A DNA stretch of 64,000 nucleotides from Octopus sinensis (Eukaryota), in NCBI RefSeq assembly GCF_006345805.1, contig NC_042999.1, forward strand, positions 139,624,001-139,688,000, written 5' to 3'. The notes below the pieces were generated by a model that saw only the letters and a list, made by a program, of their open reading frames with translations, was not told the origin of the DNA and did not search any database. How positions within the stretch are numbered: position 1 is the first letter of the stretch; every line of letters starts with the position of its first letter. A program made the position numbers and the translations under genes. This document shows, one piece after another, positions 7,847-61,046 of this stretch.

Positions 7847-7898
<52 letters not shown>

Positions 7899-19500: not shown

Positions 19501-20286
19501 TGAGAAAGTTCTTGCTCATGTCCACCCATGAAGAAAACCTGCATAAATCGTGGCTCCTCTCCTGATTGTGGGAGAAGGCTCCCAATTTTGTGGTAACATT
19601 GACCATGAATTTGGAAAGTAAAAAGCTTTTCTTTGGGCCTTGTAACAGTGGTTTGAGAAGTGCTGGCAACCTCAGTGTTGTCAGTGTTTGTCCTTGTTAT
19701 TCAGCTGTCACTCACACCAAAAGACATCATCGAAAAACATGAGTTGTATCTCTATAAACACTTTCGAAACAGCTTTCCATGGTCAGAGTCACTGGTGAGG
19801 TCCTGGATTATTTTGGGAGGAGCAGCCAGTGCCTCAAGATGAACTTTGCCCCCGGAACAGCAGAGACCTGGAGTCTCCCCTCTCCACTTTTTCGCCCCGC
19901 AGTATTTGCAGACTTGATCCATCTGTCCTATAGAAACGTCGGCTCGCGCAGTCATAAGTAGGATCGTAGTTGAAACCTACCATCAACCAAAAATTTTGTT
20001 CTGGACGATGCCGTTGTTGTCTTCAACGTTGCTGGTCCTGCAAACGAATCTTCCTGGCCTCCTAATTCTCAGTCATACGGGTGAATCGATCCCTTTCGCG
20101 CTGGGCAGAAAGACGTGATTCTCTGGCAGCAGAAGTCTCGCTTCTTCGTGATTGCCTGGTGGATTAGGAGAAGGGGCAACGCTCACATGCCTCATTACTC
20201 TCTTCGATGCATGAAAGGGTCGAACTATCATTTTGTTCAGCAACAGGAAATTCCACTGATTGCGGCGTTTCCTCAGAAGGAAGACC
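16554..20286 (-). pseudogene. Decayed autonomous Helitron RepHel (N-terminal repeats, Cys cluster, Rep, PIF1-like helicase)
   Basis: Fragments in order: GFNYDPTY; SIGQMDQVCKYCGAKKWRGETPGLCCSGGKVHL; YIVEWRKRGLPYAHILIW (Rep motif II); SAELPDPTVDPEL; VDNCWVVPYSP..HINVE..SIKYISKY (Rep motif III); FFLDAPDGTGKT (Walker A); IIWDE; LAGDFRQTLPV; LCNGTRL; MSINKAQGQSL*VVGLNL..FTHGQLYVGCSR; KTRNVVYKEALQ*. Many stops and frameshifts. Confidence 0.93.
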
Positions 20287-20842: not shown

Positions 20843-21235
20843 GGATCTTTTCGGTTTGAACGGCAGTTTTTTAAAATAATTTCCACGTAACTAAACACTT
20901 TTAAACTTCGTATACTGGTAGAATGTGTTTATAAAACATCTTTTTCTCTTGGCTTTATTGAGAAAATTCTATAGTTTGTAAGATATTTGTTTTGTTTTTT
21001 TTTTCAATTTCTGCAATTTCAACCAATCGATGACGTCTATTCTGTGCCGTATGAATATGTCCCTCGTTTAAACAACAGATTGGGTTTATTTACATTTGTG
21101 AAGAAAACAAGATACCGCCCCCACCCTAACCCTAAAACAGATTGAAATGCAATAGATCGATACTAGGGTCATAATTATGGGTGACAATTGCATATGACAC
21201 CGCTAGAAAAACTGCCATTCAAACCAAAAAGACCC
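20843..21235. mobile_element. MITE with GG-starting TIRs and 8-bp TSD (Merlin-like by inference)
   Basis: TIR ggatcttttcggtttgaacggcagtttt / aaaactgccattcaaaccaaaaagaccc; TSD AGAAATAG at 20835-20842 and 21236-21243. Confidence 0.8.
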
Positions 21236-36624: not shown

Positions 36625-36769
36625 GAAAGGCTAAGAATGGCGAAAAGGAGGAAGGCGATGACTGATGAAGAGAGAAAGGAACTACTGGTCAAGAATAGGC
36701 TAAGATTCGCCAGAAAAAAGCTGGCACGACTTACTGACGAAAGGCAGGGTTTGCTGGCTAAAGACCAAA
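36625..36769 (+). repeat. 145-bp inverted copy of gene 2 exon sequence (35197-35341) with 8-bp flanking direct repeat
   Basis: One mismatch against the reverse complement of 35197-35341; TCATGAAC at 36617-36624 and 36770-36777. Confidence 0.9.
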
Positions 36770-40200: not shown

Positions 40201-42859
40201 ATGGCAATAAAATCGGAATCAATTAGGTTTAGCAAGGAATTAGCGATAGATCGAAATAGAGTAGAGGGAGACCTGGTTAAGAAACTAGAAGAGGCACTTA
40301 CCACTGGCAGCACAACCAACGTGCTGGCTGCGAGGATGGCCCTCGACCAATACCTCAACGCCAAGCACGAAGGTTGTGTCGTCAGAGCTAAAATGCGTGC
40401 CTTAAGGAACGAAGCTGTGCGAGAGGCCCGGGTAGCGGAGGCGCAGCGTGGCAACAGAGCCACCATTCGGTCTCTAATAGATCAACAGGGATGCAGTTTA
40501 CTCGAACCCGAAAGGATGTGTGAGGCCTTTCAACAGCACTTTGCTCGACTGTTTTGTGCGAGTGGTGGGTCGGAACGCGGGATGGATTTCAGTGCCTACC
40601 TGACCGACCTGCCGCGGCTCTCGGCAAAAGAAGCGGAGTGTTGTGAAAGTCCCATCACAGCCGCTGACGTGCGGGCTGCGCGAGTGATAAGTCGCCTGGA
40701 TTGGATGGTTTACCCTACGAGCTGTATTGTCAAATGCCAGACTTGTTTGGCGACCTCTTGGCATCAGTCTACTGCAACTGGCAACAAAACGAGAGAATCC
40801 CTGGTTTCGTGAGCCGAGGTGCAGTGACGTTGCTGAAGAAAGACCCAAACAAGGGGAATTTTATAGATAATTTCAGGCCCATCACTCTGCTCAACGCAGA
40901 TTTGAAAAAGTAATAGCCGAGAGGTTGGCGCTTGTCATTGGTAAACTGGTCGACAGGGCGCAAACATGCACCGTGCCGGGCAGAACCATACATGACAATC
41001 TCCATCTGATGCGCTACATTGTGGACAGGGTAGTTAAGGATTCTGACATGGGTGGGGCGCTGATCAATTTGGATCAGTCTAAAGCCTTCGATAGGGTCGA
41101 CCATCGGTACTTGGCGGCTGGCTTCGGTCCCGTCTTCCGCGGTTGGATCGCTGCCTTGTATAGCGGCATCCGATCGGTGATTCGGGCGAACGGCCACCTG
41201 TCGAAACCGTTTGACATCACGCGTTCGGTCCGTCAGGGGTGTCCCCTGTCGGCGCTTCTGTATGTATTGACTCTCGAGCCGCTACTGCGGAAGCTGGCGA
41301 CACTGAGGGGCATCCCATGGGAACTGGGTTGCGGGACGAGCGTGTCGGCATATGCGGACGATGTCACCGTCATACTGTCGAGCGAAAAACACATCCAGAT
41401 GATAGGCGAGACACTAAGAAAATACGAAACGGTGACGGGAGCGAGGATTAACCCGGAAAAGTCAGTGGGTTTGCTACTCGGCACCTAGAGAAGCAAGCCC
41501 ATGCCGTCCGACTGCGGCTCAGTAGTGGGACGCTGGACGGACGGACCGGTTAAATTGCTCGGGGTCTGGTTCAGTCCGAACCTCCAAATGGATAAGAACT
41601 GGAACGAGATCACGAGTAGAGTGGTCGCTCTCAGCCAAACATGGGCCGAGAGAAAGCTGTCTCTAAAAGGTCAGGCGGAGGTGGCGAACGCGTACATCGC
41701 ATCCGTCATCGATTACCGCCTGACCGTCGTGCCTTGTCCCGGCGCCACCATCACCAAACTGGAACGCATACTCTTCCGCTTCCTGTGGAAGGGTGGGGTT
41801 CCAATGGTGAGGAGGTCCATTTGCTGTCAATATCCGTTGAATGGAGGACTGGGCATGCCGTGGTTGATGATGCGCTGAGACTGCGACATCTCTGGAACTT
41901 CATCGATGACGGTGAACAGGTGTGGGCGCCGTTTGTGAGGCGCGCCTTCCCGTAGCACGTCTCACTGACCGAAGTGCAAACGTGGATCAAGAAGAGACCG
42001 AAACTGGGCGATTGGCACCAAGAGTGTCGCCAAGCTCTACAGCAGCTCTGCCGACCGGGGTCAAACTTGTGCAACTTACAAACGACTAAAGCGTTCTATA
42101 GAGGACTAGTGGAGGGGAGGTCCGACGACACACTCGGGGCAAATCTGGTCGTCGACGAGAAATTCCTAACCCGCCTGTTCAGGACGACGTTCGGGCCGGG
42201 GCTTATGGATAACTTCCAGAAATCCCTGGCTTGGCAATGCTATCGAGACGCACTACCTGTTCGAGAGAAGAGCTACAGGCACGGTTCGAAAACCATCACC
42301 GGACCATCCTGCCCGAGATGCAGTCAGAGCGATGAAACCGTTCTGCACGCACTCGTGCAGTGTCCAGATATTTCAGAGCTGTGGACCTTTGTCGAACAGC
42401 TGTTGTCGCGTGTAGGACGGGCCCGCTTATCGGCCGAGTCTATCGTGAATATTGTTCCACCACCTTCCTTTAAACGGGAAGGGAAAACGGTTTTCGTTAC
42501 CCTGATGGCTATGGCGAAAGAATGTGTGTGGTGGACGCGTTTGAAAGGACTGCAAACAAACACCTTCCTCTGGTTAGTCTCTCGTCAACTTTTTCAAGTA
42601 CCACTTGAAAAGGAGGATGAGAATAGAGAGGAAGGCTTTGTCGAACGAATGTTTTAATAAAAAGTGGGTAAAAGTGGCAAAAATGGTCAGTATGAAAGAC
42701 GACACTATTTTAAGCGTAAATCTGTAACCAAAACAGACAACGAGAGGTAAGGTGACTTACTCGTGTTCATTTTCGAACTGTCTGAGGTGACCTTGGTCTT
42801 TTTTGTAGGTTTTTCTTTCCAGGGCTACACCTAACTGTGAACTTTATATATATATATAT

Positions 42860-43351: not shown

Positions 43352-46300
43352 TTGTACTACCATGGAGTGCGACCTCGCATCGAGAAAAGATTTTCCGGCA
43401 ATAACAAAGGAAATGAAAAGGACAAAAAAAGTTTTTCGGCAGCCGTAGGAGGCAATGTCATTGAACTGGAAGTAGCAATGGACAAGCTCTTTCAGTTCAG
43501 AAAATTAATTGTAAAAAATGGTGATGAAACCAAGTTGGAACCGCCCCCGGAAACTGTACAGGCAATACGGGAAAAGACAGTGGTGTAAAAAGTTTTTAAC
43601 GTCAAGGAAAAAAGAATCTCCGAGGTGAAAAATCAAATGGTGGAGCAATGTATGACTCCAATATGGAACAAAGTGCGCTACGTTAACCGAGGTGTACGAA
43701 GTGCTACAGTAGAAGCACATTTCGAGTCTGCTAACATAGCAAAAGAGATTTCAACGCAGAGGAAATCATGTTGCTGCTGACATACTTAGGCCGGCGAACA
43801 GCGAAAATATTTGTGGAAGACATACCAGCAGGGTATGATGTAATGTGGGCAGCAACGGCAGTGATATACGACGTGGAGTGCAAGATTACAATCCTGAACA
43901 TGAGGATGAAGGAAGCCACAAACTGGAGGGGACAGAGTTTAGAGATGGTTGTCCAAGGGGACAACCAGACACTCGAAAGTTTGCCCGATAGGGTCTCCGT
44001 AGGCGAAGGAATACATTCGTGTATCGGTGGAGGGATGTAGGCCCAGATGCTTTAAGTGCGGGGAGAAGGGTCATGTACGCTCTACCTTCACGAAAAAAAA
44101 ATAGTCGAGGTCCCTCCCCAAAACGAAGTGAGACAGGAGAGCGTTGCTCAAAAAAAAAAAGCAAAAAGAACAAAGTGAAAAACAAAATGAAGAACAGTAG
44201 AAAGAAGGAAAACGACCAAACGGTGATGAAATTTACAACTGTGACATATAAACGCAAAAAAGAAAGCACCCCGGACTCCCCTCCCCAAATAAAAAAAAAA
44301 CAGCAAACACGCAAGAACAACACCAAAAAATTCCCCAATCCCTCCCAGCTAACACTACATTTGGAGGTCAGCTTTTTAATAAACCCACCCCACTGTGCTA
44401 AAAAGTTTTAAAAAGACTAACAAAATAATTTCGTTCAATGATAAGAACGAAAAAGTACTTCGTTTAATCAGGGCTAATCGCCGCATAAAATTTTTTTAAT
44501 GACTGGCGGGGAGCCCGACACACGTTACGCAAAAGTCGGAGAGGAGGAGTGGAAGGGAAAGCTCCTCCAGGAACACGTAAACAACAAAACTATAAAAGAT
44601 GTTACTCAGGAAGTAATAGCTGGGAAGCTAATTATCAGCCCGGCAGCCACTCCAAACCAGAGCCCGGTGAAAAGCCCAGCAGCTACGGGGAGTGCTGGGG
44701 AAGCTGGTAGACAAAAACTGCCATACTCCTTCTCACAACAGTGAGTAAATTATTTTCTTTTCTTCAATGATTAAGTTAAGTTGTTTAAATGTGCGTGGAA
44801 TTGGGTCGAGATGGAAACAAGCTTGTTTTCTGAACGACCTCATGACATAGAATAGATGTTGTTATTGTAACCGAGTCCAAGATGAGTGGACCTCAAGCGT
44901 TCTCGCTTCTTCTGAGTAGTTACGAGAAATTTATTTCTCCGAGCCGAGGAGGGGGTGCAGGCGTAGTGGTTCTTGTCAGGAAGAACTTGGACTTACAGAT
45001 AAGTACTGTCTTTCTGGACCCAGAAAGCAGGCTGGTTGTACTAGATGTGACTCATGTGAGTAAACAGTCCTTCAGGTTGGTAGCTGTCTACACTCCTGAG
45101 AAGTGTAGGCAGTCTGGTTTTTACGAGAACCTGGAGCACTTTCTAGTGACGTCTAAAACGTTAGTTTTGGTAGGGGACGTCAACACTATCCTCGATGCAC
45201 GGGTCGATAGTGTGGGCTCAACTGATAGGAAAGGGAATCCTTGCCTCAAGGGTCTACTAGAGAGCTATAATCTAGTAGACCGTTACCGACTGGATGAGCT
45301 GAACGTTCCACAGTGGACGTGGAGTAACAACGACGGCTCACACAGATCGTACCTAGATAGGGTATTTATTAAGGAAAGAGATAAGAATAGTGTTAGTTGT
45401 CCACAATTCTGTATTGTGCCTTACACGGATCACAAACTTGTGAAGGTGGAGGCCATAGTACAGAAGTTGTCTGGAAGGCCTCTGTCCTTGAAGGGCAGGA
45501 CGGAGGTGGTGCAGGTGTTTATAGCATCTGTAATCACCTACCGCCTGTCCGTGGTACCTTGCCCCGATTTGTGGCTAAACAAGTTGGAACGACTCCTCTT
45601 CCGCTTTTTGTGGAAGGGAGGACATCCACTTGTGAAGCGCTCCATTTGCTGCCAGGAACCATTAAAGGGTGGACTGGGGATACCCTGGCTGAAGATGCGC
45701 ATATATGCATTGAGGCTGAGACATCTCTAGTGCCACCTGGAGGGTGATAGGGTGTGGAGTCCGCTGGCGGAGGAGTTCTTGCCGCAACCGGCCTCTTTGG
45801 AGAGATTTAAACCCAGTCTCATTAAAAGATATAACCTGACTTCATGGCAGAAGGAGTACCGTCAGGCACTCTGGCTGATCCACAAAACGAGCAAGGCTGG
45901 CAGCAGGAATACCACCTCAGTGTTCTATAGAGGGCTGGTAGAGGCAAAAAACAATGACGTCCTAGGAGGGGCTCTGGGGTTTAATGAGAACCAACTTGCC
46001 AACCTGTTCAAAAAAACTTTCAGGCCGAGGTACTTGGATAACTTCCCAAAATCCCTGACCTGGCAGTGCTATAGGAACGCTTTACCTGTTCAAGATAAGT
46101 TAGCCAGGCACGGAGTACCAGTGTCACCAACGTGTCCAAGATGTGGGTTGGACAATGAAACTGTCCAGCACGTTTTTGTACAATGTCGGGAGCTATCCAG
46201 CTTGATAAGTTACGTCGAACACGTGCTGTTGCATCTAGGACGAGTACAGCTGTCAGCTGAATCTATAATAAAGATGATACCGCCAACTGGACTCACAAAG

Positions 46301-46790
46301 AAAGGTAAGGCATGTTTTTACTGTACGGTTGCAGTACTGAAAGAGTGTGTTTGGAGGACGAGAATGGAAGGTTCTGTGAAAGGGTCCTTCATCTCTGCTG
46401 TCTTACTTCAGATACCATCTGAAGAGCAAGATGGGGTTGGAGAGGAAATCCCTGCCACCGAGAGAATATGAGAAACGATGGAAGGATGTGATGAGAAAGT
46501 TGGGTGTTAGTAACCCAGCTTAATCATTGCTGAAAGGAAAAGATAGTTGCTGGGCCTTATAGGCTGCCGGGTTTCGATCTTTTAAACTTTTATTCGTTTT
46601 CTTTCTTTGTTTTATTTTATTTTTAAAAAGTTCTAGTTTAAAGGGAATTAATCATTGTATAAAATATTTTTAAGTAAATTTTTAAAACGATATTCATACG
46701 AACTCATATAACATTTTTTGTTTTTGTTTGTCTTGTAATGTCCCTTTCTATGTAAGATCATTTTTTATCATAACAGTTTCGTTTTAAACT
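43352..46790 (+). mobile_element. Second Tx1/L1-like LINE, internally deleted (no RT)
   Basis: ORF1 remnant (EAHFES, TYLGRRT). ORF2 from 44767 (MIKLSCLNVRG, VGDVN, YLDRVF, TDHKLVKV) jumps at ~45450 straight to the post-RT region (LSLKGRTEV...CPRCGLDNETVQHVFVQC); about 1.6 kb is missing relative to the first LINE. Confidence 0.85.
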
Positions 46791-47031
46791 TCAAGAAAGA
46801 AAGCCTTCAAGTTTATAATGAGACATTGCTGGCATAATTTCGTTATATCTATATACCACAACATAAATACATTCGGTACTATTTAAGAAGAGCAGTCCCG
46901 GTGAGCGCACTTGCGCTAGTTAGTCGTGACCAGTTGACCCTACAACGACTACCTATCCTATAACAAATGTTCGTACAAATTCGGTTGAAAGTTATTAGAA
47001 GAACGTAAAATAACGTTTTAAGGGTATGATG

Positions 47032-47667
47032 GGATCTTTTTCTTTTGAACGGCAGTTTTCAACACAATTTCTAGTCAACTAAACACTTTTAAACTTCGTA
47101 TACTGGTAGAATGTGTCAAAATAAAACATTTTTTTCTCTTGGCTTTCTTGAGAAAATTGTAATTTGTAAGTTTAACGTAGTTTAATTTTTCGAATTTTAA
47201 CCAATCCTATGCCCTGTATTGAGCTAAAATCATTTGCTGCATCTAAAACTGAGAAAACATCCTGTCACTAACCCTAACCCTAAATTTTAGCCTTTCGTTT
47301 TTTTTTTCTTAATTGTTAAATTAATTTAAGGATAACAATTAAGGAAAAAAAAAAGAAAGCAAAAGCTCAAAACAAAAACAAAACGAATAATTTTAGACAC
47401 ACACGTAACAATTAAATTAATTTAACAATTAAGAAAAAAAAACCCAAAAGGCTAAAATTTAGGGTTAGTGACAGGATGTTGTCTCAGTTTTAGATGCAGC
47501 AAATTCGAAAAATTAAACTACGTTAAACTTACAAATTACAATTTTTTCAAGAAAGCCAAGAGAAAAAAAATGTTTTATTTTGACACATTCTATCAGTATA
47601 CGAAGTTTAAAAGTGTTTAGTTAACTAGAAATTGTGTTGAAAACTGCCGTTCAAAAGGAAAAGATCC
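47032..47667. mobile_element. Foldback MITE, related TIR family, 8-bp TSD
   Basis: Almost fully palindromic; ends GGATCTTTTC...GAAAAGATCC; TSD GTATGATG at 47024-47031 and 47668-47675. Confidence 0.85.
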
Positions 47668-48061
47668 GTATGATGAGGGTACCAAAAACAGGTAGTATGT
47701 TATTTTTAAAAAAGGATTTCGATTTCAGGAACAATGAATTGCGGTCCTGCTGGTCTTGCACATACCATTCTGTTCAATTCCAAAGTAAATATCCGGTATT
47801 TATGCTGACTTATGTATGTCCTTTTACTAGTTAAACCCCACCACCCCAATTTTTATTTACTTTTTAAAACTGAACAATTACCCTAATTTTATAGATACTT
47901 CTTTCAAAATTACCGTTTTCATCACTTTTATAGGCTGAACAATGTAAAACGTTAAAGATAGAAGCCTCGTTTAAATCTAACACAAGCTAGGTTCAATGTT
48001 GTATCTATATCTTGGTCTTGTAGTATAATACCATTCATATCTGGGATGCTTTATAAGAATA

Positions 48062-48455: not shown

Positions 48456-49849
48456 TGCTTTTTTTTTTCAGTCATAGAGTTAGATTTATGAAGGTCTTCA
48501 GTAGAAAATCCTTCGAATTCTGACTCGCTGCTTGATATAATGAAATTCGTATCCATTTTTTGTCAGAATTACAAATTTTGAAAACACAATAGGAACAAAT
48601 TTCGGAAAAAAATCTCCCATAATTCACGGAATTAAAATTACACTTCGATTTTTGTACAAAACTGTAGTTGAAGTGTTTACGAAGTATAATACGTGTTTTC
48701 ACGAATGTACTAAAGAGATTTGCTCTGATATTCTCATTTAAATATGAATAGGTAAATTCGGGCGGCTTGGTAACTATATATAAGTGTCGTCTGTTTATAC
48801 ATAAACACTGGTTCATACTGCAATTATATATACATATATATCTATATATAATATTATATAATAAAATATATACAGAGTAAAATAAAAACCAATTTACCTT
48901 TTCTGTCCGTCCGTGTGTCTTTGCAAATGTGTTGGAATGATAAGTGAGTTGAGTTTTGGCGCCTTTTTTACTAATAACAAACACACACGTGTTTGTATGT
49001 AGTTGTATGTGTATGTAGTTGTGTGTAGTTGTATATGTATGTGTATGCGTGTGTGTGAGGAATGACACACACACACTCACGCACGCACACATGTACATCA
49101 ATGCTTTCGGAGTGATATGTTAAAATATTGAGTTTTCTCGAATTTTGTCTTAATTGGTGGTAAAATTGAAAGAAATTTTTTATGGCATCACCCACTGAAG
49201 TACTCTGAAAAATCTTAGGTAAATTCTAATTGAAGAAATTGTGTGAGGAGTAATTGGTTATGTATTTATTTGTTTCTGTTTGCTGTGTTTTTTTATTTTT
49301 TGAGTAGTGGTTGAAATACTTTCAGTTTAGTCTTCCTCAAATCACTCTGTCGCTATTTACTTTCATTTTATTCGTTGCCCACTGTGTGTGTGCGTTTGCG
49401 TGTGGTGTAAACCAGACTAAGAAAAGCATTTGACACACACACCAGAATGTGAGTTTTCTGTAAATTTTGCTTAATTGGAGTTTAAATTTTAAAAACTGGA
49501 CCTGGCATGACGCGATGCATTGTACTCTCAAAAATGCTAGGTAAATTGTAATTGAAGAAATGCTATATTGTAGATTTGTATAACTCCCAAAGGGAGGCAG
49601 ATAATATCTGCCTTTTATAATAAGAGATTAAATTGACCGAAACACTTACACTTTATTGATCCTTTTTCATCTGAAAGGCAAAATTGACATTGGTGGGGTT
49701 TGAACCCAGAAAATAACTATATACCATGCCAACAAAAGCCAGGTACAGGGGCTTATCTTTGGTTAGGTATTTCTCCTGCAGTTGTCGAACCAGGAATATG
49801 GTATTAGTGGTGCTTCCACCTGGCACAAAACTGAACTACCTCTCATCTA

Positions 49850-50478
49850 AGCAGACTCTGTCCCTGATGAGATGGGCTATGACCCACCTCCGTGACCTTC
49901 GTTACCTGATCCAGCAGTTTGATACCTCTGTAGTTATTTCTATCTAGAGCATCACCTTTACCCTTGTAGTAGTTGACCATGGTGCTGCTACGCCAGTCGT
50001 TGGGTATGATTCCATCATGAACTACCTGGTTTACAATGTGGGTGACTAGGCCATAGCCTACAGCAACAGATGTTTTAAGCATCTCAGCAGTGATTTCTGA
50101 TGGGCTGGGGGCTTTTCCTGGCTTCATACCCTTAATTGCTTTATCTACTAGGGAGCTGTCTATACGGATAGCTGGTCCTTCTACTGGGTGAACATTTGGC
50201 AGGCTCTCCTCCTCCCATTCATTCTCCACATTCAGCAGTCTTTCATAATCGCTTCTCCAAGCCTCTTTCTTTTCAGAATCATTAAAAGCAAGTGCACCAT
50301 CATCCATTCGGACACATTTCTCTCCTGTGACATCACAATTTTCTCTCACACACTGTCTTGCAATCTGAAATGGCTCAGTTCTTTGGTCCTCATGTTCCTG
50401 GACACTGGCAAACTTCTTTTCTGCTTCGCTCTTGGCTATGTATACCGGCCACCCAATCTCCCTCTTGGCTGGGTGGCA
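49850..50478 (-). mobile_element. RTE LINE ORF fragment (linker to start of RT)
   Basis: KEAWRSDYERLLNVENEW...KAIKGMKPGKAPSPSEIT...KGKGDALDRNNYRGIKLL. Confidence 0.8.
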
Positions 50479-50486
50479 GGTATACA

Positions 50487-50529
<43 letters not shown>

Positions 50530-51074
50530 TTTTATGTGGCATGTAAGAGCAGCCCTGGTCAAATTGTTCAACTCATGCAAGCCTGGGCAATGGACATTAA
50601 ATGATGATGATGTGCATGTGTATATATGTATATATATATACATAGACACTTTTTTTTATGGGTCAACAAGGCTACTAATGATTTCATAGAAAGAGGGATA
50701 GCTTTTGCCTCCATTTTGGATGAGAATACACGAATTTACACAATACTGTATAGAATTTTGGGATAAATTTACAGATCATGGTTGATAACTTATAAAGAAA
50801 TCTTGTTTTCTTATAAACAGTTTGTGCAAAGGCTTTATGGATTTAGGTATTCTATAGAAAAATCCAACAATAAAGTAATCTGGTTGTTAGCTATTGAATT
50901 TGTAAAGAGATTCTTACAAAACAAAAAAAGGTTTTTTTTTCAGAGAAATCAAACAAAACAATTATTTTGGAAATTTTTAATATACAAATATAATTATTTA
51001 TCAAAATATAAATACTCAGTCAGATATATATATATATATATATATGCACAATCGAAAGATTAATTTTTATGGTG

Positions 51075-52031
51075 TCAAGTAAGGTCATTTGCTTTATATA
51101 AACTTATACTTTTGACATTGGTAACTTGTGTTGATGATAATGGTAAACTGTCCCCTCCTGCTGTAAAAAGTCCTACAGGATAGACACCTTCATTGCTACC
51201 AGAAGTCACATTGCTGTCAATTGACTGAGTTGTTATAGTTTGATTTAGTGGTTTTGAAGGGTCTTCTCTTATGGGACTGGACTGAGAACACATCTGTTCT
51301 AAAATACATGATGCAAGGGATAAGTTAGAAACTAGAGAACTTTCAAATACATTAGATTTTAATTTAGCTGTTATTCCATGTATTATATCTGTTGCTGCTT
51401 CATTTGAAACTGTAGATGTATCAAAATGTTTATTCAGGTGACCGTATTCGTTATCTTCAGGCCCTACAGGCTCGATTTTCAAACTAGGGGCCATGCAAAA
51501 ATTTTCAGAAAAGTTATTTTTTGTACTACTACTCAGTGATCCAATCTCAGATTCTTGTCTGAAGACATTAACTTTATCCTTCTTAGCCAGTGGTAATTCA
51601 GTCTCAAAAGGCTCTTGTTTAATATCAAATGCTTGTGTAGTGATGGATGGAGTAGACTGAGATGTAACTGAAATGATAGATGATGATGATGGTAGAGGTG
51701 GTTGAACTGATAGTTCGGTCTGTGTGTTGTAATGGTCACCTAAGACAGTAGATGTTGAAATATGTGGTTGAGATTCTTCATATGGAAGACAACTATCACA
51801 CAGTTGTTCAAATTCTTTCATGTCCAAACGTTTTGCAATGATTTTCAACTGATGTAAAATATCTGGATCAAGATCTAATAATCCATTGTACATGTATTCA
51901 GCAAAGGCATTTAAAGCTTGTGTACTTACTTCCTCTGGAAAGTTAATTTCAAGAAAATTGCGAGAGGGGATATTTGTACTAAATACTGACAACAGTTTTG
52001 GACACACAGCAGACAGGACAACTTTATGTAC
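51075..52031 (-). CDS. BTB gene 3, terminal exon
   Basis: Acceptor tttcag|GTA CAT AAA; 319 codons to TGA. VHKVVLSAVCPKLL...EYMYNGLLDLD...AKRLDMKEFEQLC. Confidence 0.9.
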   Translation of the reverse strand, partial: VHKVVLSAVCPKLLSVFSTNIPSRNFLEINFPEEVSTQALNAFAEYMYNGLLDLDPDILHQLKIIAKRLDMKEFEQLCDSCLPYEESQPHISTSTVLGDHYNTQTELSVQPPLPSSSSIISVTSQSTPSITTQAFDIKQEPFETELPLAKKDKVNVFRQESEIGSLSSSTKNNFSENFCMAPSLKIEPVGPEDNEYGHLNKHFDTSTVSNEAATDIIHGITAKLKSNVFESSLVSNLSLASCILEQMCSQSSPIREDPSKPLNQTITTQSIDSNVTSGSNEGVYPVGLFTAGGDSLPLSSTQVTNVKSISLYKANDLT

Positions 52032-52278
52032 CTGAAACAAAGTAAATGATAAAACATGCTAATAACTTAACTTAAATCAAGGAGTAAGTCTTTATTTCTT
52101 GTTTTTCTCCCCCAAAATATTCAATTCCAAACAGGAAAGCAATTGTCTCTAATGAAAGATTAGTAAAATTCAAAAGTTATTTTGATCTGTGTATCTTTAT
52201 TAGCAATTTGAAAAAAATTATATCAATATGATGTACAGGTAACTTTAAAAATCTTAAGAAACTGTTTGATAAATATTA

Positions 52279-55200
52279 TGTGGTTTTAGTAGTGTTATGG
52301 GCTGTGATGGAGCTATGTGGTGTTGGTGGAAGGGATTGCAGATGAGGTGGACGGAAGTAAGGCTTGCAGGGGCCGGCGGAAGAGTCACAGGGGTGTGCGT
52401 GTGAAGGAACCACGTGTGGTCAGCAAGCACATGTGGCCAGTTTGAGCAAAGATGGCAGAGAGACAAGACATGTTTAATTCATGAGAGTGACCGCTGATTT
52501 CACCGAGGTCAACAGGTAAGACCTTTTGTATTTCTTTCTCTCGTTTGCTTCTTTTTCTGTTGTCCTTTTCCTTCATCACACTACAAGCTATTTCGGTCCA
52601 TAACAAAAAAAAAAAAAAAAGAATGATGAGTGTTGTCCGTATTTTGAATGATATGATCAAACCATTTTGCAGTGACACAGATGTAGTCGCTTGGTTGAAG
52701 AAGATGAAGTTGGTGGTGAAGCTCCACGGTATAAGTGACTTATAGAGTTTTATACCGCTGTACTTGGATGGTTCGGCGTTGGCGCTGTACCTAGAAATGG
52801 AAGAGAGGGACCGACTTAGCGTGGAGAAAATAGAAATCCGTTTGATGGAGGCCTTTGCAGAGGGAATGTTCGAGGCATACGCTCGCCTGGGGAAAACAAA
52901 ATGGACTGGGGAACAGGTTGACGTATTTGCAAACGAACTCAGGAGATTGGCTAAACTGGCGGGATATGAGGGAGAATCGCTGGACCGAACGGTTAAGTTG
53001 GTGTTTGTGACTGGCTTTCCTGACCACATGTCGGTCGAGTTGCAGAAGCTGCCGAATATTCACTCGATGGTGATGGCAGACATTGTATCTCGGGCTCGCG
53101 TGCTAGTTTCGTGCTGCAGAACAACGTTGGTAGCAGCGACTTCAACAATTAAAAGTGGCCATGGAAAGAGCAGCAGAGAGGGGTCAAAGAAAGAACATGT
53201 GCGATCATTCAAAGGACAGAGTTTCCGGTGTCAGGGCCCGCACATGGTATGAGACTGCGAGTCACCCAAGCCTGAGGTCATTTGCTACTGGTGTCGAGAA
53301 ACGGGACATATAGCCAGCGAATGTTTGCGGGGAAATGGTCTGAGGGAGACTACTGCACTGGTAGTTGTCCCTTTGGATCAATAGAGGTGCGTTTATCGTC
53401 ATTACCTGTAGTCGACATTCTGGTGGAGTGGAAGATGTCGCAAGCCCTTGCGAACACGGGCTGTACAACGACCCTGATGACTCCAAAAGTGGTAGAGACG
53501 TGGAGTGCAGAAAGCAGTGTAAGTGCAGTCAACGGAAGAGAAGTACACTGTGAAGGCATTACAGATGCGCAGATTGTGGTGCAGGGAATAAGGCTGACGC
53601 TACGAGCAATTGTAGTTGGCCACTTGGTGGACGAGATTGACGTGGTGATGGGGATGGATGCAATCACCCGTTTGGGAGGTGTCACTGTTAACAAGGCCAG
53701 TGTAACGTTCAGGTTTGCGGGGAACCCATGTATGGGCGAGACTGTGCACTGATGAGAACCATGAAGAAAAGTATGCTGCACACGCCATTGAAGACCAGGA
53801 TTTTCGGGCTGTTTTCGATGGCCAGAGGTGGACAGTGGAGTGGCACTGGAAGGGAGAGCCCCCGACATTAAAAAATAAAGTGGGCTGCTATCAGCATACC
53901 CTAAAAGGAGATGCCAGAAGTGAGTTTGAGGGGGATGTGGAGCAGTGGATTAAGGAGGGCATACTGATCCCTTGGGATCAAGAAGAGAGCAGAGTCCTGC
54001 CACTGATGGCGGTGGTACAGACCACAAAGCATAAGGTCAGGCCAGTGCTTGACTTCCGAGAGCTGAACAACCACGTATCATGTCATACAGGCGGCGAGGC
54101 CACAGATGTCTGCAGAGACACCTTGCGAGTGTGGAGACAGATGACAGGGGCCTCCACGATCGTCGATTTGAAGTCGGCATACTTGCAGGTACATGTGGCT
54201 GAGAAACTGTGGAAGTATCAGCTTGTCAGGTATAAGGGCCGGACATACTGTCTGATCAGGTTGGGGTTCGAGCTGAATTCAGCGCCAAAAATCATGGCAA
54301 CAATTCTCAAGGCCATCCTGGGAAAGGTGGACAGAGTTAAAAAGGCCACCAATTCGTACATTAATGACATTCTGGTGGATGAAACTGTAATGCCAGCAGC
54401 GGAGGTCATAGGCCACTTGAAGAATATGGGACTGATCGCCAAGCTACCAGAGGCAATAGAGGAAGGTGCTGCACTGAGCCTCAAGCTATGGAGAGATAAG
54501 GCCGGCACATTGGTGTTCCAGCGAGGGAACGAGATCCTCGAACTGAGTGCCAGCATGAGTAGACAGGATCTGTTCTTGGTGTGTGGGAAGCTGGTGGGAC
54601 ACTACCCGATTGCAGGATGGCTCCGGACAACATGTAGCTTCATCAAGAGACGAGCCGAAGGAGTGAAGTGGAACGATAGAGTGGGGGAGAAGACGACCGA
54701 CATGATACAGGAAGTCTTGATCAGAGTGAGAGCAGAGGATCCAGTGAGGGGCAGTTGGTATGTTCCCAAATCAAAGAGTGGGATTGTATGGTGTGATGCC
54801 AGTAGCATCGCAATAGGGGTTGTCTTGGAAGTGGGAGGCGTCATGGTGGAAGATGCAGCCTGGCTCAGGAAGACGGATGACTGCAATTATACCAATGTGG
54901 CGGAGTTGGATGCTGTGTTGAAGGGAGTGAACCTAGCCTTGAAGTGGGGGCTGCACACCATAGAAATCAGGACTGATTTGGCCACTGTACTTGGTTGGGT
55001 GACAGCAGTCATCACCATTGAGCGGAGGGTGCGAACCAAAGGGGCCGCAGAGATGCTGGTAAAGCGTAAACTAACCACTGAGTTCAATCTGTAGCTGATC
55101 TTTGTGCCTTCCGAGAACAAGGCAGACGTCCTGACCAGGGTAAAGCGAGTCTGGTTGCAGGTGCCAGAGGATGCAGAGCAGGCTGTGGCCGCAGTATGCC

Positions 55201-56483
55201 ATCTGAGTGACTTGGAGTTGAGGAGATTGCATACCATGCATCACATGGGGGTGGACAGGATGTTGTTCCTAGCTAGGAAAGTTGACTCTGATGTAACAAG
55301 ATGGAGCGTGGTTAGCAGCTGTGACAGGTGGCAGTCCATCGACTCTGCTCCGGGCGAACATGAGGCAGGAAGTATTCCAGTGGATCACGACTGGCGGTGG
55401 ACATAACACACTACTGGCAGGGGACATACCTCTCAATGGTTGACTGCGGACCGGGGCGGTTGGCCATATGGAGGAGATGAAGACAGGGACCGCAGAGGAA
55501 ATTGTGAAAGTATTAAATGAGATATTCCTGGAACGAGACCCCGTGGATGAACTGCTTCTGGATAATGGCACTGCATTTCGCTTGGAGGTGCTGAAAGAAA
55601 TGCTTGATGGGTGGCAGGTGAACCCCTTCATCAGGATGGCATACCGGCTGAGTGGAAATGGGGTGGTGGAAAGGCATCATCGTACCATCAAGACCATGGC
55701 AGAGAGGGGCCACATTTCACCAATCGAGGCTGTATTTTGGTACAATATGTCGCCCAAGTCAGGACAGGCTGAGGAGTTGGTGCCACACGGAAATATTCAG
55801 GTACGAGTGGAGGCATCCATGTACTGCATCAATGTGACCCGGAACAGAGGAAGAGCATGCCTTTGTGCAGGTCGGAGAAGAAGTTTGGGTAAAACCCCCA
55901 AACGTATGGTGTACATCACGATGGGGAAAGGGAATAACCTCCATCAATTCGAAGAACAACGTCTCTGTCAATGGTGTGCCACGCTACATTTTGGATGTAC
56001 GGAAGATTGTCCATGCCTCAGTAGGCAAGAAGATGAAGCAAGCAGCAGCATGCCAGGAACTCAGGCTAGTCCCGGGGTCGCACGGTGACCACAGAGGGAG
56101 CGGCACCCTCCTCCCTGGTTGGCTGATTATGAAACCAGTTAAGGTGTGAGTTTGGGAGCGAGGAGTGAGTGGGAAAGCCAGTTGTAGGGGGCATGTGGTG
56201 TTAGTAGTGTTATGGGCTGTGATGGAGCTATGTGGTGTTGGTGGAGGGGATTGCAAATGAGGTGGACAGAGGTAAGGCTTGCAGGGGCCGGCAGAAGAGT
56301 CACAGGGGCATGCATGGGCAGGAAGCATGTGTGGCCAGTTTGAGCAAAGACAGCAGAGAGACAAGACGTGTTTAATTCGTGAGAGTGACTGCTGATTTCG
56401 CCAAGGTCAACAGGTAAGGCCTTTTGTATTTTTTTCTCCTGTTTGCTTCTTTTTCTGTTGCCCTTATCCTCCATCACACTACA
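52279..56483 (+). mobile_element. Full-length decayed Ty3/Gypsy LTR retrotransposon
   Basis: LTRs 52279-52585 and 56194-56483 (TG...CA, roughly 90% identical by eye); 5-bp TSD TATTA at 52274-52278 and 56484-56488; purine-rich PPT before the 3' LTR. Gag with CYWCRETGHIASEC knuckle, degenerate protease (ALANTG), RT (DLKSAYLQ, YIND), RNase H (WCDAS), integrase (SGNGVVER) in RT-RH-IN order. Confidence 0.93.
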
Positions 56484-56931
56484 TATTATAAAACACACTG
56501 AGAAAGAGAAACTTGTGTTACTGGACACTTGGAACTAACATATTTTTTATGGCATATAAGATGTACTTTTTTACCAAAAAAAAAATGTTTCAAAAAGTTG
56601 GGCCTCCCATAAGCTTGTATTTTCTCGTATGTTTTATTACTGTAATCATGTAGAATATTTTCACTAGCATGATTCCTGAATTTCGGTTGAGTTGCACTGC
56701 TAACTTACTTTTTATATACAGTGATGTTTTCTGCTATAGCTAAAATATTTCTCTAATCTTTTGTAACATATACTAGATTACTTTAAATATTACATGCTTT
56801 TATGCACTAAAACTCTTTTTCTTGAATATGCACTATGGAAATTGTGGGGGGCATCTATTTGTTCTATCAAGTGCAGCAACTATGTTGGAGGCATTTCTAA
56901 ATACTAAAGTTTTAAAAAGCAATATACTTAC

Positions 56932-57381
56932 CATCACAGCAGATGAACCGTTACTAATACTAGCATCACACAGTTTTCTATTCCTCCACAACGAAGCAAT
57001 GTTAGACATCACATGGCGCTGATAATTAGCAATTACAAATATCTGTTTCCGTGGAGTTTTTCCCACAGAACGGCGGGCTTGTGTTTGTTCTGCGGTTTCA
57101 GCTGCCCTTGCGTTGGCTGTGGCAGCGGCATCTAGAGAATGGCGGGCCTGTTTTTGTTTTGCAGTTTTGGCTGCCCTTGCATTGGCCATGGCAGCGGCAT
57201 TTCGTGAACGGCGGGCCTGTGTTTGTTCTGCGGTTTCAGCTGCCCTTGCGTTGGCCAAGGCAGCGGCATTCAGAGCTAATCGAGTAGCTCTGTCTTGGAG
57301 TGCCTCTTTGGCCCTTTTGGCCCTATGAGCCTCTGCACCAGCCGTCCTTCTTCCAATGCGGACCCTCTTCTTTGGGGGCAT
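56932..57381 (-). CDS. BTB gene 3, first coding exon: basic N-terminus, about 3.5 23-aa repeats, then N-terminal half of BTB
   Basis: aaaATG start; MPPKKRVRIGRRT...; 69-bp DNA repeat at 57071/57140/57209; ends SNIASLWRNRKLCDASISNGSSAVM|gtaagt in phase 0, in frame with the 52031 exon (468-aa product). Confidence 0.88.
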
Positions 57382-58961
57382 TTTGGCAATTTATTGAAAT
57401 AAGTGAACTTTAAATGGATTTAATTTTTGTGGACTAAGTGAGATAGTTTGGGGCAACCGATAAGCACACGATTTTAAGTAATGGCAAAGCAATAATCAAA
57501 ACGATAATGGCAGAAACGGTACCCAAATGGAAAACAAAGGGCTATTTAAAAACAGTAAAAAAAATCGTAGACAGGTTTCAGGTTTTCAAGCACAAAAACT
57601 GTTTACTGTGCTTGTAGGTTGGTGAAAAAAACGTTGGCTGCTCAAGAGAAGCAGTAATCAAAAAGTGATATCAAACACGAAAACGTCTATTTTTTACTCA
57701 AAAAATGATGCTGAACTACAAATTCTCTAATTAATACTTTGGTTAATCAAATCTTGAACTGATATCGAGCACAAAAAGACCAAAAAAATTGGTGTCAAAC
57801 TGCAGAAGATGCTTTAAGTAAGTGTTAATTTATGAGTTGATAGGCAAAAATATAACCGGGCAACCCAAGTAAAAGTGATAGGTAAAATGGAATTTTATGA
57901 ACAAAACTTGTGGTCAGTAACGGAAATCGAGTCACGAAGCGTAATTGTGAAAAGCGTTTGAGTTTGGTCGCCAAAGCATGCATCCTCATGCTTAATTAAC
58001 GCATCGAATCTTAATTTATAATTATCTAGTACGCGCAAATCCAAGGCCGCGCATCCAACGTCAGATGTTTACGTATGTCCCTCAGCAGCATTGGCCAGTA
58101 CACGCACGCATGCATATACGCACACGTTCAAGGTCAAACGCAGTGCCATGTTCACGCACAGGATGACTAAGTGCCTACACGGGAAAAGGCTTTTTGTGGT
58201 GTTTGATGCACGGGCTAATTAATTAGTGGAAAGTGGATTCAAGTTAGAAAAACATAGGGCATTTGTGAAGTGAGAAAACCCAATCTATTTGCGGTAGCAA
58301 ACAAAGAGCTTATTATGTGGAAGTTAAGGCTAAAAGAAAGCGGTTGTAATTCAATTTGAATGGGGAAGCCCGTAAGGTATTTTTATGGGCAAACTCTAAT
58401 CAAATTAAGATTTCACGCACCATAAGTAATAATCTGAGTACCCTTGTCACCTGCTATGTAGATAGCGAACGATTCGACCTCATGCTGAATGCGAACTCAA
58501 CAAACAATGGTTATGTGTATTTTCAAAATCATGCTGTGGTACGGTCAAAATTCGAGTTTTTCGCATTCTTCTTCCTCCTTTTTTTTGTCCGACTATGACA
58601 TGTGCACAGTCCTGCTAACTGAAAGCTTCATATTATGTGCTTGTTGTTCGTTTCCGGTGTTTCAATAAAAAGTTCTTACTTAATCAAGGTAGTGCAGAAA
58701 CACTGTATGACTCGTGAGTTCTAGCCTTGAATTGTCTTAGGTACCGGTGTGCTTACCTATAAAATGGGGTAAGAACAAGACTCAAGCTTTTTACAGATAA
58801 AGATTTCTTCGTTTTGTGCTAAATCCCTTTCTTTGTTTTCGGAAATTATGTTCGCCTTTCCTGTCTGCAAACGCGCACGCGCATGCAACTGATAAGGGTA
58901 AAATTATCTCCGTCCAATCAAAAAACAGCTAGCAGTCTATTCGGCGTATCTAGCTGTACGC

Positions 58962-59136
58962 CACTGACCATTCAGAGACGAAGAGGCCGACCAAGAATCC
59001 GCTGGCTTGACACCATCAAGAGTGATACCGGAATAGACATAGCCAATCTGAAAGAAGCGGCCCAGGAAAGAACTGACTGGAGGACACTGATCCAACGAGT
59101 AACCGAGAGTCGACTTCGACTGAGCGGATAGATAGA
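58962..59136 (+). mobile_element. Short 5'-truncated RTE (BovB-like C-terminus) insertion
   Basis: RGRPRIRWLDTIKSD...DWRTLIQRVTESRLRLSG*; (GATA)n tail; 11-bp TSD TAGCTGTACGC at 58951-58961 and 59137-59147. Confidence 0.8.
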
Positions 59137-59276
59137 TAGCTGTACGCACGCACCGCGTACAAATTTCTATGTTTTAGCGATTTTGAACGGATATGCCCAT
59201 AACTTATGGGCATAAGGAATCGGTTTATCGATTTTTTTTAATGGCTTTCTGGGGTGACGGGGGAAATGAAAAGATC

Positions 59277-59680
59277 GGATCTTTTCGGTTTGACCAGCAG
59301 TTTTTAAAAATACTTTCCACGTAAACTTTTAAACTTCGTATACTGGTAGAATGTGTTTATAAAACATCTTTTTCTCTTGGCCTTATTGAGAAAATTCTAT
59401 AGCTTGTAAGATATTTGTTGTTTTTTTTCTTCAATTTCTGCTATTTCAACCAATCAATGACGTCTATTGAGGTGAAAATATTCTGTGCCGTATGAATATG
59501 CCCTTCGTTTAAGAAACAGATTGGGTTTATTTACATTTGTGAAGAAAAACAAGATACCCTCCCCCCCACTCTAACCCTAAAACAGATTGAAATGCAATAG
59601 ATCAATACTAGGGTCATAATTATGGGTGACAATTTCATATGACACCGCTAGAAAAAACTGCCCTCAAACTGAAAAGATCC
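59277..59680. mobile_element. MITE copy, same family as 20843-21235
   Basis: Colinear and highly similar to 20843-21235 with the same TIRs; no TSD recognisable. Confidence 0.8.
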
Positions 59681-61046
59681 TATTTTATACTAAAAAATAA
59701 AACACGGCACTTCTGAATATCAACAAACATGTCAGCCGATACAAGGGGCGGTAACTTGTATTAGATATTATTAATGATAGGAGAGGCCCGACAATAACGT
59801 TTGCAACTTCTTGATTATTTTTAATCAGATTTTTTACTGCGCACACTGATAAGGGTTAGTATTGCACGTGCTGTTACCATGTAACAGCTATTTGCAAATA
59901 TCTGTTCAGTGGTAACAGGACGTGCTAGAAATACCAGCCAAATTAGTTAATGTTTAGAAGTACACCTGCACGTCAAACCACACCTCTGTTCTATCTTGTA
60001 TATATACATTATAGCCTCTGGCCCACCAAAGCCTTGTGAGTGGATTTCGTACACGGAAACTGAAAGAACACTGTCGTATATATGTTTATATGCCCCCACC
60101 TTTGCTTTACAACCGATGTTGGTGTGTCTACATACCTATAACTTAGCAGTTCGGCAAAAGGCACTGATAGAATAATTAGTAGGCAGTGCTCCAGCATGGC
60201 TGCAGTCACCTGACTGAAACGAGTAAAACAATAAAGAACTATACCATTTTAATCCCGAGCAAGGCCAGGTATCTTTGCTAGTATATATAAAACAAAGAAT
60301 GTCTGTGTAATACATATGCATTTCTACAGTTTTCAACTGATTATCGCCAAACGTTACACACACATCACTTGTGTGCCAAGGATGGTCATGCACTATAATT
60401 TTTTGCCCAGCGCTCCTGCGTAAAGGGAGAAACAGGGAATAAAGGTGTTTTACATGGGTTTTATTTTTCTAACAACTGCAGTTTTCAACCGATTCTCTCC
60501 CTTTTCTCTTGCATATAATTTCTCTCACCTTTGGTAATAGTTTCTCTTTTAGTCTGTCTTCTTTCTTTTCTCCATCCCTCCCTTTCTTTATTTCTCCTTC
60601 CCTCTTTCTTCCCTTTCTTTCATTCTTTTTCCCTCCCACCCGCTTTCTTTCTGTTTGAGTAAATGCAGTGGTCCAGTATGGCCACAGTCAAATAACTGAA
60701 ACAAGTAAAAAAAATTTTTTAAACTGTCATTTTAATCCCAAGCAATGCCAGATTATCTCTGCTATTTCTAAATAGATTTGTAAAATTATGTTATGCAATA
60801 TTTAAATAAATTTTAACTTTTACTGTAAGAAAAATGGGCATAATGACAGATGCCAATATGCGCCTTATGAATACATTTCAACACCATACAGACCAGGCCG
60901 AAAGGAGCGTAGGCTCGAAACGTAAAAGACTTGTTTTATTTATATTCCTGAGCACCATACTAATACAATTGTTTGTTTGTCTTCCACCTGCCTTCGTCTT
61001 TTGTCTATTTTCATAAAGCTTCTCGTTATATATATATATATATATA

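Follow-up and report, generated by a model that had tools for sequence, protein, structure and literature searches.

We analysed a 64,000-nt stretch of the Octopus sinensis genome (assembly GCF_006345805.1, contig NC_042999.1, positions 139,624,001 to 139,688,000 of the forward strand; hereafter the window), which contains three paralogous genes for BTB domain proteins, all on the minus strand (genes 1, 2 and 3). Our main subject is gene 3, in which one uninterrupted exon runs from repeats of the STPR type into the BTB domain. Gene 3 is probably a young chimera formed at the DNA level, in which the start of a Rep/Hel protein of a Helitron transposon became joined to a partial copy of a neighbouring BTB gene, gene 4. 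The 5' piece (57381-57069) would be the beginning of a Helitron Rep/Hel frame with its own start codon, the MPPKKR motif and 3.5 STPR repeats, and the 3' piece (57068 to about 50379) would be a partial genomic copy of gene 4. The two pieces appear to have been joined in frame at a microhomology of 2 nt, on DNA and not through splicing. As a consequence of this in-frame joining, a single exon would read from transposon repeats into a complete BTB domain. The loci of O. vulgaris (L002) and O. bimaculoides (L003) were used for comparison.

Structure of gene 3

The features of gene 3 and its duplicated flank are as follows.

56932-57381, minus strand: gene 3 coding exon 1, an open frame of 150 codons, with the same structure in the annotated O. 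vulgaris protein P0001
57343-57381, minus strand: MPPKKRVRIGRRT, start codon and basic motif resembling a nuclear localisation signal (NLS), as opens Helitron Rep/Hel proteins; shared with the relatives described below
57067-57306, minus strand: STPR-type array, with units at 57306-57238, 57237-57169 and 57168-57100 and a truncated fourth unit at 57099-57067 (ETAEQTQARRS)
57067-57069, minus strand: breakpoint codon TCT (Ser105), of which the CT at 57068-57067 is common to the repeat unit and gene 4
56932-57066, minus strand: final 45 codons of the ancestral linker/BTB exon (VGKTPRKQIF...SSAVM), with 93% identity to gene 4
52032-56931, minus strand: gene 3 intron (GT at 56931-56930, AG at 52033-52032), with a nested long terminal repeat (LTR) retrotransposon
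51075-52031, minus strand: gene 3 coding exon 2, with the remaining BTB domain, a Ser/Thr-rich C-terminal region and the stop codon at 51077-51075
50379-51074, minus strand: 3' flank duplicated with the gene, paralogous to L002 14115-14708, with a repeat/microsatellite insertion of about 120 bp

From the start codon, exon 1 runs through the Helitron-type N-terminus and the STPR repeats into the beginning of the BTB domain. The minus-strand translation of 57381-56900 reads MPPKKRVRIGRRT AGAEAHRAKRAK, followed by EALQDRATRLALNAAALANARAA / ETAEQTQARRSRNAAAMANARAA / KTAKQKQARHSLDAAATANARAA / ETAEQTQARRS and then VGKTPRKQIFVIANYQRHVMSNIASLWRNRKLCDASISNGSSAVM, with zero stops. A GTAAGT donor begins at 56931, so that 56932 is the final base of the exon, in agreement with a first-pass annotation of the window. 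This annotation had placed repeats and BTB domain in one open exon at 56932-57381, and the 150 codons are indeed free of stops. Its residue listing was correct in order and sequence, but omitted the 12 residues AGAEAHRAKRAK.

The predicted spliced product has 468 amino acids. Its Pfam BTB match (42.8 bits; cut-off 20.5) covers residues 131-232 and positions 4-106 of the 110 in the profile, and the BTB domain therefore crosses the splice junction. All matches in a homologue search with the spliced protein were cephalopod BTB proteins. The top match, P0001 (CAI9720170.1), is an independent O. vulgaris annotation with two exons and 468 amino acids, and is 99% identical to the gene 3 product. The G+C content, which is 38.5% over the window, changes in steps along gene 3, from 32.6% upstream to 57.2% over the STPR part and then to 40.1% over the remainder of exon 1.

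Gene 4 as the parent gene

Gene 4 (P0002 in O. vulgaris) lies about 7.8 kb upstream of gene 3, just past the end of the window. Its STPR repeats lie on an exon of their own (L002 9361-9642), which is followed by the small exon, the linker/BTB exon (11582-12136) and the last exon. The paralogy between genes 3 and 4 extends from 57068 (L002 12000) to 50379 (L002 14708) at 93-97% identity (blastn). Its onset is abrupt and falls within an exon, 45 codons short of the end of gene 4's linker/BTB exon; from there it covers the intron, the last exon and some 0.7 kb of the 3' flank, but none of the exons upstream. In gene 3, the paralogy is broken by the LTR retrotransposon (52278-56483) and a small repeat. 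Exon 2 is 97% identical in DNA to the corresponding exon of gene 4, and the shared BTB and C-terminal region is 96% identical in residues.

To locate the breakpoint, gene 3 was aligned jointly with gene 4 (L002 11938-12048) and with the repeat units that precede the joint. Gene 3 reads ...GCCCGCCGTTCT|GTGGGAAAAACTCC where gene 4 reads ...AGAAAACCT|GTGGAAAAAACTCC, and the frame is kept. Because the repeat register explains the bases up to TTCT, the microhomology is limited to CT (2 nt). The joint lies 8 residues before strand beta1 of the BTB domain, which is thus intact; 56932-57066 encodes beta1, helix alpha1 and the next two strands.

The first-pass annotation had favoured recombination or insertion at the DNA level over exon capture, and the mid-exon onset of paralogy, the 2-nt microhomology and the G+C step all point the same way. 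It had also noted that the small exon and linker of genes 1 and 2 are missing from gene 3. They are absent, as the separate exons of these genes make clear, but this does not reflect a deletion from a gene of the gene 1 or 2 type. Instead, the alignments support gene 3 as a partial duplicate of gene 4, with repeats that were probably acquired independently from a Helitron-type source.

Two routes could have joined the pieces. Microhomology-mediated repair or template switching may have copied part of gene 4 beside a resident Helitron 5' fragment. Alternatively, a Helitron derivative may have captured a gene 4 fragment and then inserted nearby. We infer the joining mechanism, as well as the expression, nuclear localisation, DNA binding and dimerisation of the gene 3 product.

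Downstream of gene 4, an inverted copy (70% identity) was observed at L002 14851-15915 (compared with L003 20644-21662), and a direct copy at L002 16322-16807. These copies near the end of the duplicated segment point to a complex rearrangement or a foldback repeat.

Helitron relatives of the N-terminus

Residues 1-113 of gene 3 were compared exhaustively with 1.84 billion representative proteins by phmmer (E <= 0.001). This search yielded 32 non-self relatives, largely N-termini with 23-amino-acid repeats. A word-indexed homologue search with the same residues gave zero matches and missed even P0001, which is 97% identical. Many of the relatives align from residue 1 and open, like gene 3, with MPPK(K/R)R...GRxT; a start of the MPPK(K/R)R type is present in 17 of the 32, for example in P0040 (MPPKKRVCLGRRT) and P0047 (MPPKKRPRIGRQS). 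The best relative, P0040, aligns from residue 1 with an E-value of 1.2e-13 and 47% identity.

Several relatives can be followed beyond the repeats. P0040, P0052 and P0056 continue into a FQMTSFG / FKVQGQV region, Helitron_like_N is present in P0046 and P0056, and P0049 is a Rep/Hel protein of 2069 amino acids with the domains STPRs, DUF6570, OTU, Helitron_like_N and PIF1. Two of the relatives, P0046 and P0052, come from cuttlefish and bear the name 'Helitron helicase-like domain-containing protein'. Among the 32 relatives, Pfam identified STPRs in 18 (E <= 0.001), Helitron_like_N in four, DUF6570 in four and PIF1 in two; when ten relatives were scanned singly, five passed the Pfam cut-off for STPRs. 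The label 'Helitron-like', which the first-pass annotation had attached to the repeats, is thus well founded, with 32 relatives of which several run into Helitron-specific sequence. These alignments support a derivation of gene 3 residues 1-105 from the N-terminus of a Helitron Rep/Hel protein.

The Rep (Helitron_like_N) and PIF1-like helicase domains are absent from gene 3 and its surroundings. Hence, gene 3 is not itself a Helitron, but the likely carrier of a Helitron-derived fragment.

Elsewhere in the window, an unrelated, decayed Helitron remnant lies on the minus strand at 16700-20250, upstream of gene 1 and in the same orientation, with Helitron_like_N, PIF1 and Pif1_2B at 16700-19544. 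It has stop-interrupted STPR-like repeats at about 20250-20050, ahead of its Rep / 'FW..GFNYDP' region. A match of 88% between 59277-59680 and 20843-21235, upstream of this remnant, was considered as a shared Helitron 5' region. It was rejected as a separate repeat resembling a miniature inverted-repeat transposable element (MITE), because further copies of the segment, in both orientations, are present at 47028-47161, 47537-47668 and 5685-5940.

The repeat array and its STPR identity

The array consists of 3.5 units of 69 bp (23 amino acids), which begin at residues 26, 49, 72 and 95. Tandem Repeats Finder reported 57067-57275 with a period of 69, 3.0 copies, 82% matches, 0% indels and a score of 313; the exact 69-bp period given in the first-pass annotation is therefore correct. 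The units form an A-B-A' pattern. Between units 2 and 4, 31 of 33 nt agree, and between the adjacent units 2 and 3, 57 of 69 nt, whereas unit 1 agrees with the other units at just 43 of 69 nt. The units that begin at 57071 and 57209 had been called nearly identical, which slightly overstates the 91.4% identity over 70 nt between 57275-57206 and 57137-57068. A recent expansion of the repeats was not demonstrated and is weakly supported, because the copy number is the same in O. vulgaris as in the window and the units differ by 6-38%.

STPR units have a conserved Glu1, Thr/Ser2 and Arg9, and contact phosphates through Arg6, Arg9, Leu10, Tyr16 and Arg20 (PMC4856987). All three conserved positions are present in units 2 and 4 of gene 3, which read ETAEQTQAR. 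They are partially present in the other two units: unit 1 reads EALQDRATR, with A at position 2, and unit 3 reads KTAKQKQAR, with E at position 1 in O. vulgaris. Residues 1-105 contain 24 K+R against 8 D+E.

Against gene 3, the Pfam STPRs profile (PF21107) was aligned over its whole length (1-74 of 74) with 17.5 bits and an E-value of 0.0057. Direct phmmer of the N-terminus against the Protein Data Bank (PDB) gave chance matches to Ala-rich mycothiol synthase only, so that a profile was needed to detect FMBP-1. Profile A3, built from the gene 3 double unit and the repeats of its relatives, matched Bombyx mori FMBP-1 (5d23) with an E-value of 1.7e-10, as the sole significant PDB family. A protein search with this profile returned only fragments of 38-81 amino acids, too short to show a combination of STPR and BTB outside cephalopods. 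STPR homology is thus supported indirectly, via the relatives (18 of 32) and via the profile match to FMBP-1, and homology was found to both Helitrons and STPRs.

Gene 3 resembles FMBP-1 in its strict 23-residue period, in Glu1, Thr2, Gln5 and Arg9 of units 2 and 4, and in its predicted helices, which break at unit borders. It differs in having units that are Ala-rich in their second half, and 3.5 units instead of four.

Age, orthologous site and sequence constraint

With O. bimaculoides as the reference, 31 residue states unite genes 3 and 4, and 4 and 8 support the alternative groupings. In O. bimaculoides, the locus contains one gene of the gene 3/4 type, at 6.5 kb from the STPR exon of its gene 2 ortholog, and no gene-3-like sequence was found in these 6.5 kb. 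The MPPKK/Ala-rich N-terminus is absent from all four isoforms of this species' LOC106877741; isoform X1 (P0086) has the layout STPR, small exon, linker and BTB. Colinearity between the window and L003 stops near 60414-60181 and restarts near 37030. Gene 3 thus lies within a lineage-specific block of about 23 kb, which consists largely of LTR and long interspersed nuclear element (LINE) sequence. We conclude that gene 3 appears to be young and to belong to the Octopus vulgaris/sinensis lineage, since it is absent at the orthologous site of O. bimaculoides.

The 3' flank of gene 3 runs into a LINE fragment where that of gene 4 stops, which prompted a model of simple tandem duplication with later insertions. 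This model was rejected because ancestral intergenic DNA separates genes 4 and 3. As this intergenic DNA is ancestral according to O. bimaculoides, the partial copy would have landed about 5.5 kb downstream of its source.

Over the coding sequence shared by genes 3 and 4, synonymous divergence (dS) is 0.054 and non-synonymous divergence (dN) 0.018, with a dN/dS of 0.33 (12 synonymous and 14 non-synonymous differences). Gene 3 of the window and of O. vulgaris differs at five of 1407 nt, too few for a test of selection.

Alternative explanations

Several observations weigh against this interpretation of gene 3. Helitrons are marked by 5'-TC, by a 3' hairpin with CTRR and by insertion between A and T, and neither a Helitron body nor recognisable termini could be identified beside gene 3. 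No other copies that would define Helitron ends were found in the sequences compared, and nested repeats lie upstream. Apart from the remnant at 16700-20250, Rep/Hel remnants were found neither near gene 3 nor in the rest of the window, L002 or L003. No match to the region upstream of gene 4, the window or L003 was obtained with the 1.5 kb that precede the gene 3 ATG. The nearest Helitron-type relative is only 47% identical. Furthermore, gene 3 itself misses the Pfam cut-off for STPRs (17.5 against 27 bits), and four of the five positions of the phosphate contacts in BmSTPR are changed: its units carry T6, R10, A16 and A20 where FMBP-1 has R6, L10, Y16 and R20, and only Arg9 is kept. Moreover, no O. 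sinensis protein with the gene 3 sequence occurs in the searched collection, despite exact O. sinensis matches elsewhere, and the O. vulgaris gene 3 model is without untranslated regions (UTRs). The O. sinensis isoform P0010 joins the BTB-start exon of gene 4 to the small exon of gene 2, skipping gene 3. The window and O. vulgaris differ at five positions in gene 3, four of which lie in the repeats; three of these four changes are non-synonymous.

The best surviving alternative accepts the fused exon as real, but regards the locus as a non-functional partial duplicate that is still open owing to its youth and yields no protein. This explanation is possible, though less likely. It is favoured by the lacking UTRs, the missing O. 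sinensis protein, the splicing of P0010 past the locus and the concentration of O. vulgaris differences in the repeats, as well as by the presence of a 4.2-kb LTR retrotransposon within the intron. Against it stand the 468 open codons with both splice sites intact in two assemblies, the dN/dS of 0.33 relative to gene 4, and the whole BTB fold spared by the breakpoint. In addition, about 8 changes in about 340 residues occurred on the gene 3 branch, compared with about 20 under neutrality (a rough estimate, with dS split equally). Conversion between genes 3 and 4 could weaken these counter-arguments.

A second alternative derives the MPPKKR-STPR segment from a cellular STPR gene with the same N-terminus, either an FMBP-1/ZNF821-like gene or a gene for an uncharacterised STPR protein. 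It is quite unlikely. Several relatives are short STPR-only proteins, such as the Ancylostoma protein P0042 ('STPR domain-containing protein'), and the modest identity of the best match and the lack of a Helitron body or ends beside gene 3 also speak for such a source. However, the relatives that reach past the repeats enter Helitron-specific sequence (P0040, P0046, P0052, P0056, P0049, P0044), the cephalopod relatives are annotated as Helitron proteins, and the short STPR-only matches would most simply be truncated models of transposon open reading frames (ORFs).

Finally, it is highly improbable that the family's own STPR exon was moved beside the BTB exon by deletion of introns, small exon and linker, although the older family members all have an STPR exon upstream of the BTB exon and the STPR exon of O. 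bimaculoides gene 4 is 39.7% identical to the gene 3 repeats (tblastn, no composition correction): in a common phmmer scoring frame, the gene 3 N-terminus reaches 42-68 bits against Helitron-type N-termini, but 21 bits against this gene 4 exon and 6.5 bits against the gene 2 exon, while the gene 1 STPR exon is not among the matches listed. Likewise, the DNA of 57069-59000 has no similarity to the paralogues' STPR exons or to the region upstream of gene 4, the start MPPKKRVRIGRRT is Helitron-type and unlike MMPRSRSM, MSRKRHEM and MRTKRSS, the G+C content of the repeats is 57% against 45% in the gene 2 STPR exon, and the upstream exons of gene 4 were left out of the duplication.

Predicted protein

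AlphaFold2 (AF2) was run on gene 3 residues 1-258 with the family alignment. It predicted helices at residues 14-24, 28-47 and 51-97, which are interrupted where STPR units meet their borders at residues 26 and 49. The predicted local distance difference test (pLDDT) score was 81-93 for residues 11-70, and the joint at residues 95-109 was of low confidence. The BTB fold was predicted as complete, from the strand at 113-115 to the helix at 222-231, with block pLDDT values of about 64-92; its N-terminal beta1/alpha1 extension comprises the strand at 113-115 and a helix at 119-135, and strands follow at 140-143 and 148-151. Foldseek matched it to the BTB domains of PLZF, BCL6, Miz-1, Bach1 and NS1-BP (probability 1.00, target template modelling (TM) score of about 0.7). 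The gene 3 product is predicted to be a nuclear protein that would dimerise through its BTB domain in the manner of ZBTB proteins and contact DNA via tandem STPR helices, as its older paralogues would, but with another, Helitron-type set of repeats. The MPPKKRVRIGRRT motif may function as an NLS.

Surroundings of gene 3

Two further features flank or interrupt gene 3.

52278-56483, plus strand: LTR retrotransposon in the gene 3 intron, with LTRs at 52278-52585 and 56193-56483 and pol-like ORFs on the plus strand
57382-60181, minus strand: upstream DNA that is lineage-specific compared with O. bimaculoides; candidate 5' UTR and promoter, and possible Helitron 5' region

The retrotransposon is absent from the 1.08-kb intron of gene 4, and its flanks in the gene 3 intron are paralogous to that intron. 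Its ORF at 53715-55094 matches DUF7047 and RVT_3. The two LTRs are 85.7% identical (about 9% mismatches), whereas the non-coding DNA of genes 3 and 4 differs by 4-5%, although the insertion is specific to gene 3. This divergence could mean that gene conversion has kept the two genes alike, in which case the duplication is older than it appears, or that the element is a recombinant. The upstream DNA contains nested repeats, a LINE tail at 58883-59131 (plus strand) and the MITE-like copy at 59277-59680.

LINE-type elements at 37265-42657 and 44882-46471 (plus strand) and 49843-50649 (minus strand) account for most of the lineage-specific block that separates gene 2 from gene 3. They include an RVT_1 match at 40925-41488, ORFs resembling endonuclease and reverse transcriptase, and a gag-like ORF with a CCHC knuckle at 38328-39023. 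Elsewhere, a 462-bp unit at 6452-7875 is present in 3.1 copies with 98% identity, flanked by TG/TA microsatellites; copies of this family also occur in the gene 4 intron (L002 12623-12974) and in intergenic DNA of O. bimaculoides.

Paralogous BTB genes of the cluster

The coding exons of the other two BTB genes in the window are as follows.

14190-13849 and 13505-11991, minus strand: gene 1, with the linker exon at 14184-13849
35536-35123 (STPR exon), 29754-29653 (small exon), 29572-29303 (linker/BTB exon) and a last exon to 27307, minus strand: gene 2

Over 313 residues, the last exon of gene 2 is identical to O. sinensis proteins, and it agrees with an O. vulgaris protein at 311 of these. 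Its STPR exon has the lower G+C content mentioned above. In the paralogues, the repeats are followed by the small exon and by a linker of 90-110 residues. The paralogues (genes 1, 2 and 4, and LOC106877741 X1) resemble gene 3 in having a basic N-terminus, STPR-type repeats and a BTB domain in the same order. They differ in that their repeats have an exon to themselves, ahead of the small exon and linker, and are not close to those of gene 3.

About 1.5 units are left in the STPR exon of gene 1 at 15167-15274 on the minus strand (AETAEQRQARLEAQKWWSKTHLAALKV), where stops lie upstream and an in-frame ATG is lacking. In O. bimaculoides, the STPR N-terminus of protein P0034 (MRTKRSSLGRLT...) is longer than that of gene 1, and the exon may be decaying in the window. 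The last exon of gene 1 (11991-13505, minus strand) has an internal duplication of about 170 residues, in which QLASTVTAFDDTRQMP...SDTTNSKAT occurs twice within an ORF of 504 amino acids. An inverted partial copy of the gene 2 STPR exon lies at 36625-36768 on the plus strand, about 1.1 kb upstream of the real exon; its 48 residues are 98% identical to residues 66-113 of P0012, and the copy is also present in O. bimaculoides (L003 26516-26660). A neighbouring BTB gene (O. bimaculoides LOC106877732; L002 1-8934; P0004-P0009) has many isoforms with differing C-terminal DNA-binding domains, namely THAP, FLYWCH and CENP-B_N/HTH_Tnp_Tc5. The cluster resembles the complex BTB loci mod(mdg4) and lola of insects.

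Comparison with known systems

Helitrons are known to capture genes and to generate chimeric genes in maize and bats. STPRs are among the domains stably carried by HLE1 Helitrons according to the HELIANO paper, which also mentions Helitron capture of gene fragments (PMC11417382); the link between Helitrons and STPRs is therefore already known. Gene 3 resembles the N-termini of HLE1 Rep/Hel proteins in its MPPKKR...GRRT start, followed by 23-residue repeats of the form ETxEQxxxRxxxNAxxxAxxRA (E-values of 1e-13 to 1e-5). It differs in that it ends inside the fourth repeat and is without the zinc-finger-like region, Rep and PIF1. Moreover, its fragment serves as a host coding exon and not as a transposon.

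As in Helitron capture, an intron-bearing genomic fragment lies beside Helitron-derived sequence, in what would be a DNA-level copy with a chimeric frame. In contrast with typical capture, gene 3 would take its start codon and DNA-binding-type repeats from the transposon and read on in frame into a complete host domain, an unusual outcome, and no Helitron ends were identified at gene 3.

Fusions of BTB to the zinc-binding domain of an integrase and of F-box to helix-turn-helix (HTH) domains have been described (PMC12062965). As in other transposon-host fusions, a nucleic-acid-binding module of a transposon is joined in gene 3 to a multicopy host interaction domain (BTB). Unlike in these fusions, the putative donor is a Helitron and not a DDE transposon or retroelement, and the joint lies within an exon on DNA instead of being spliced. 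Cosby and colleagues reportedly described host-transposase fusion genes in 2021.

Hence, STPR modules of Helitrons, gene capture by Helitrons and transposon-host domain fusions, including those with BTB, are already known. The new element is the probable fusion of a Helitron STPR module with a duplicated BTB gene, made at the DNA level inside a single exon and with the frame preserved. The literature searched contained no paper that connects octopus, Helitron and BTB.

A broader scenario is that octopod BTB genes recruited Helitron STPR modules repeatedly, anciently in genes 1, 2 and 4 and through recent replacement in gene 3, and that STPR-BTB proteins could repress Helitrons. It is based on the start of O. 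bimaculoides gene 1, MRTKRSSLGRLT, which resembles the Helitron start MPPKRKSIGRST, and we consider it unlikely. If it were true, the pairing of a Helitron's DNA-recognition repeats with a BTB repression/dimerisation domain might yield a Helitron-directed repressor, comparable to transposase-derived repressors.

It is recognised that new transcription factors can arise when domains of transposons and hosts fuse. To our knowledge, most known fusions are old, were put together by splicing and trace back to DDE transposases or retroelements. In the case of gene 3, the parent gene is adjacent, the site is empty in the outgroup and the breakpoint is narrowed to a 2-nt microhomology, so that the birth of a fusion may be read base by base. 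Even if gene 3 is not expressed, it would still record the raw-material stage of gene birth. If it is expressed, it could be tested whether the STPR repeats of Helitrons bind DNA and which sequences they bind, and whether the BTB partner turns these repeats into a regulator, possibly of Helitrons.

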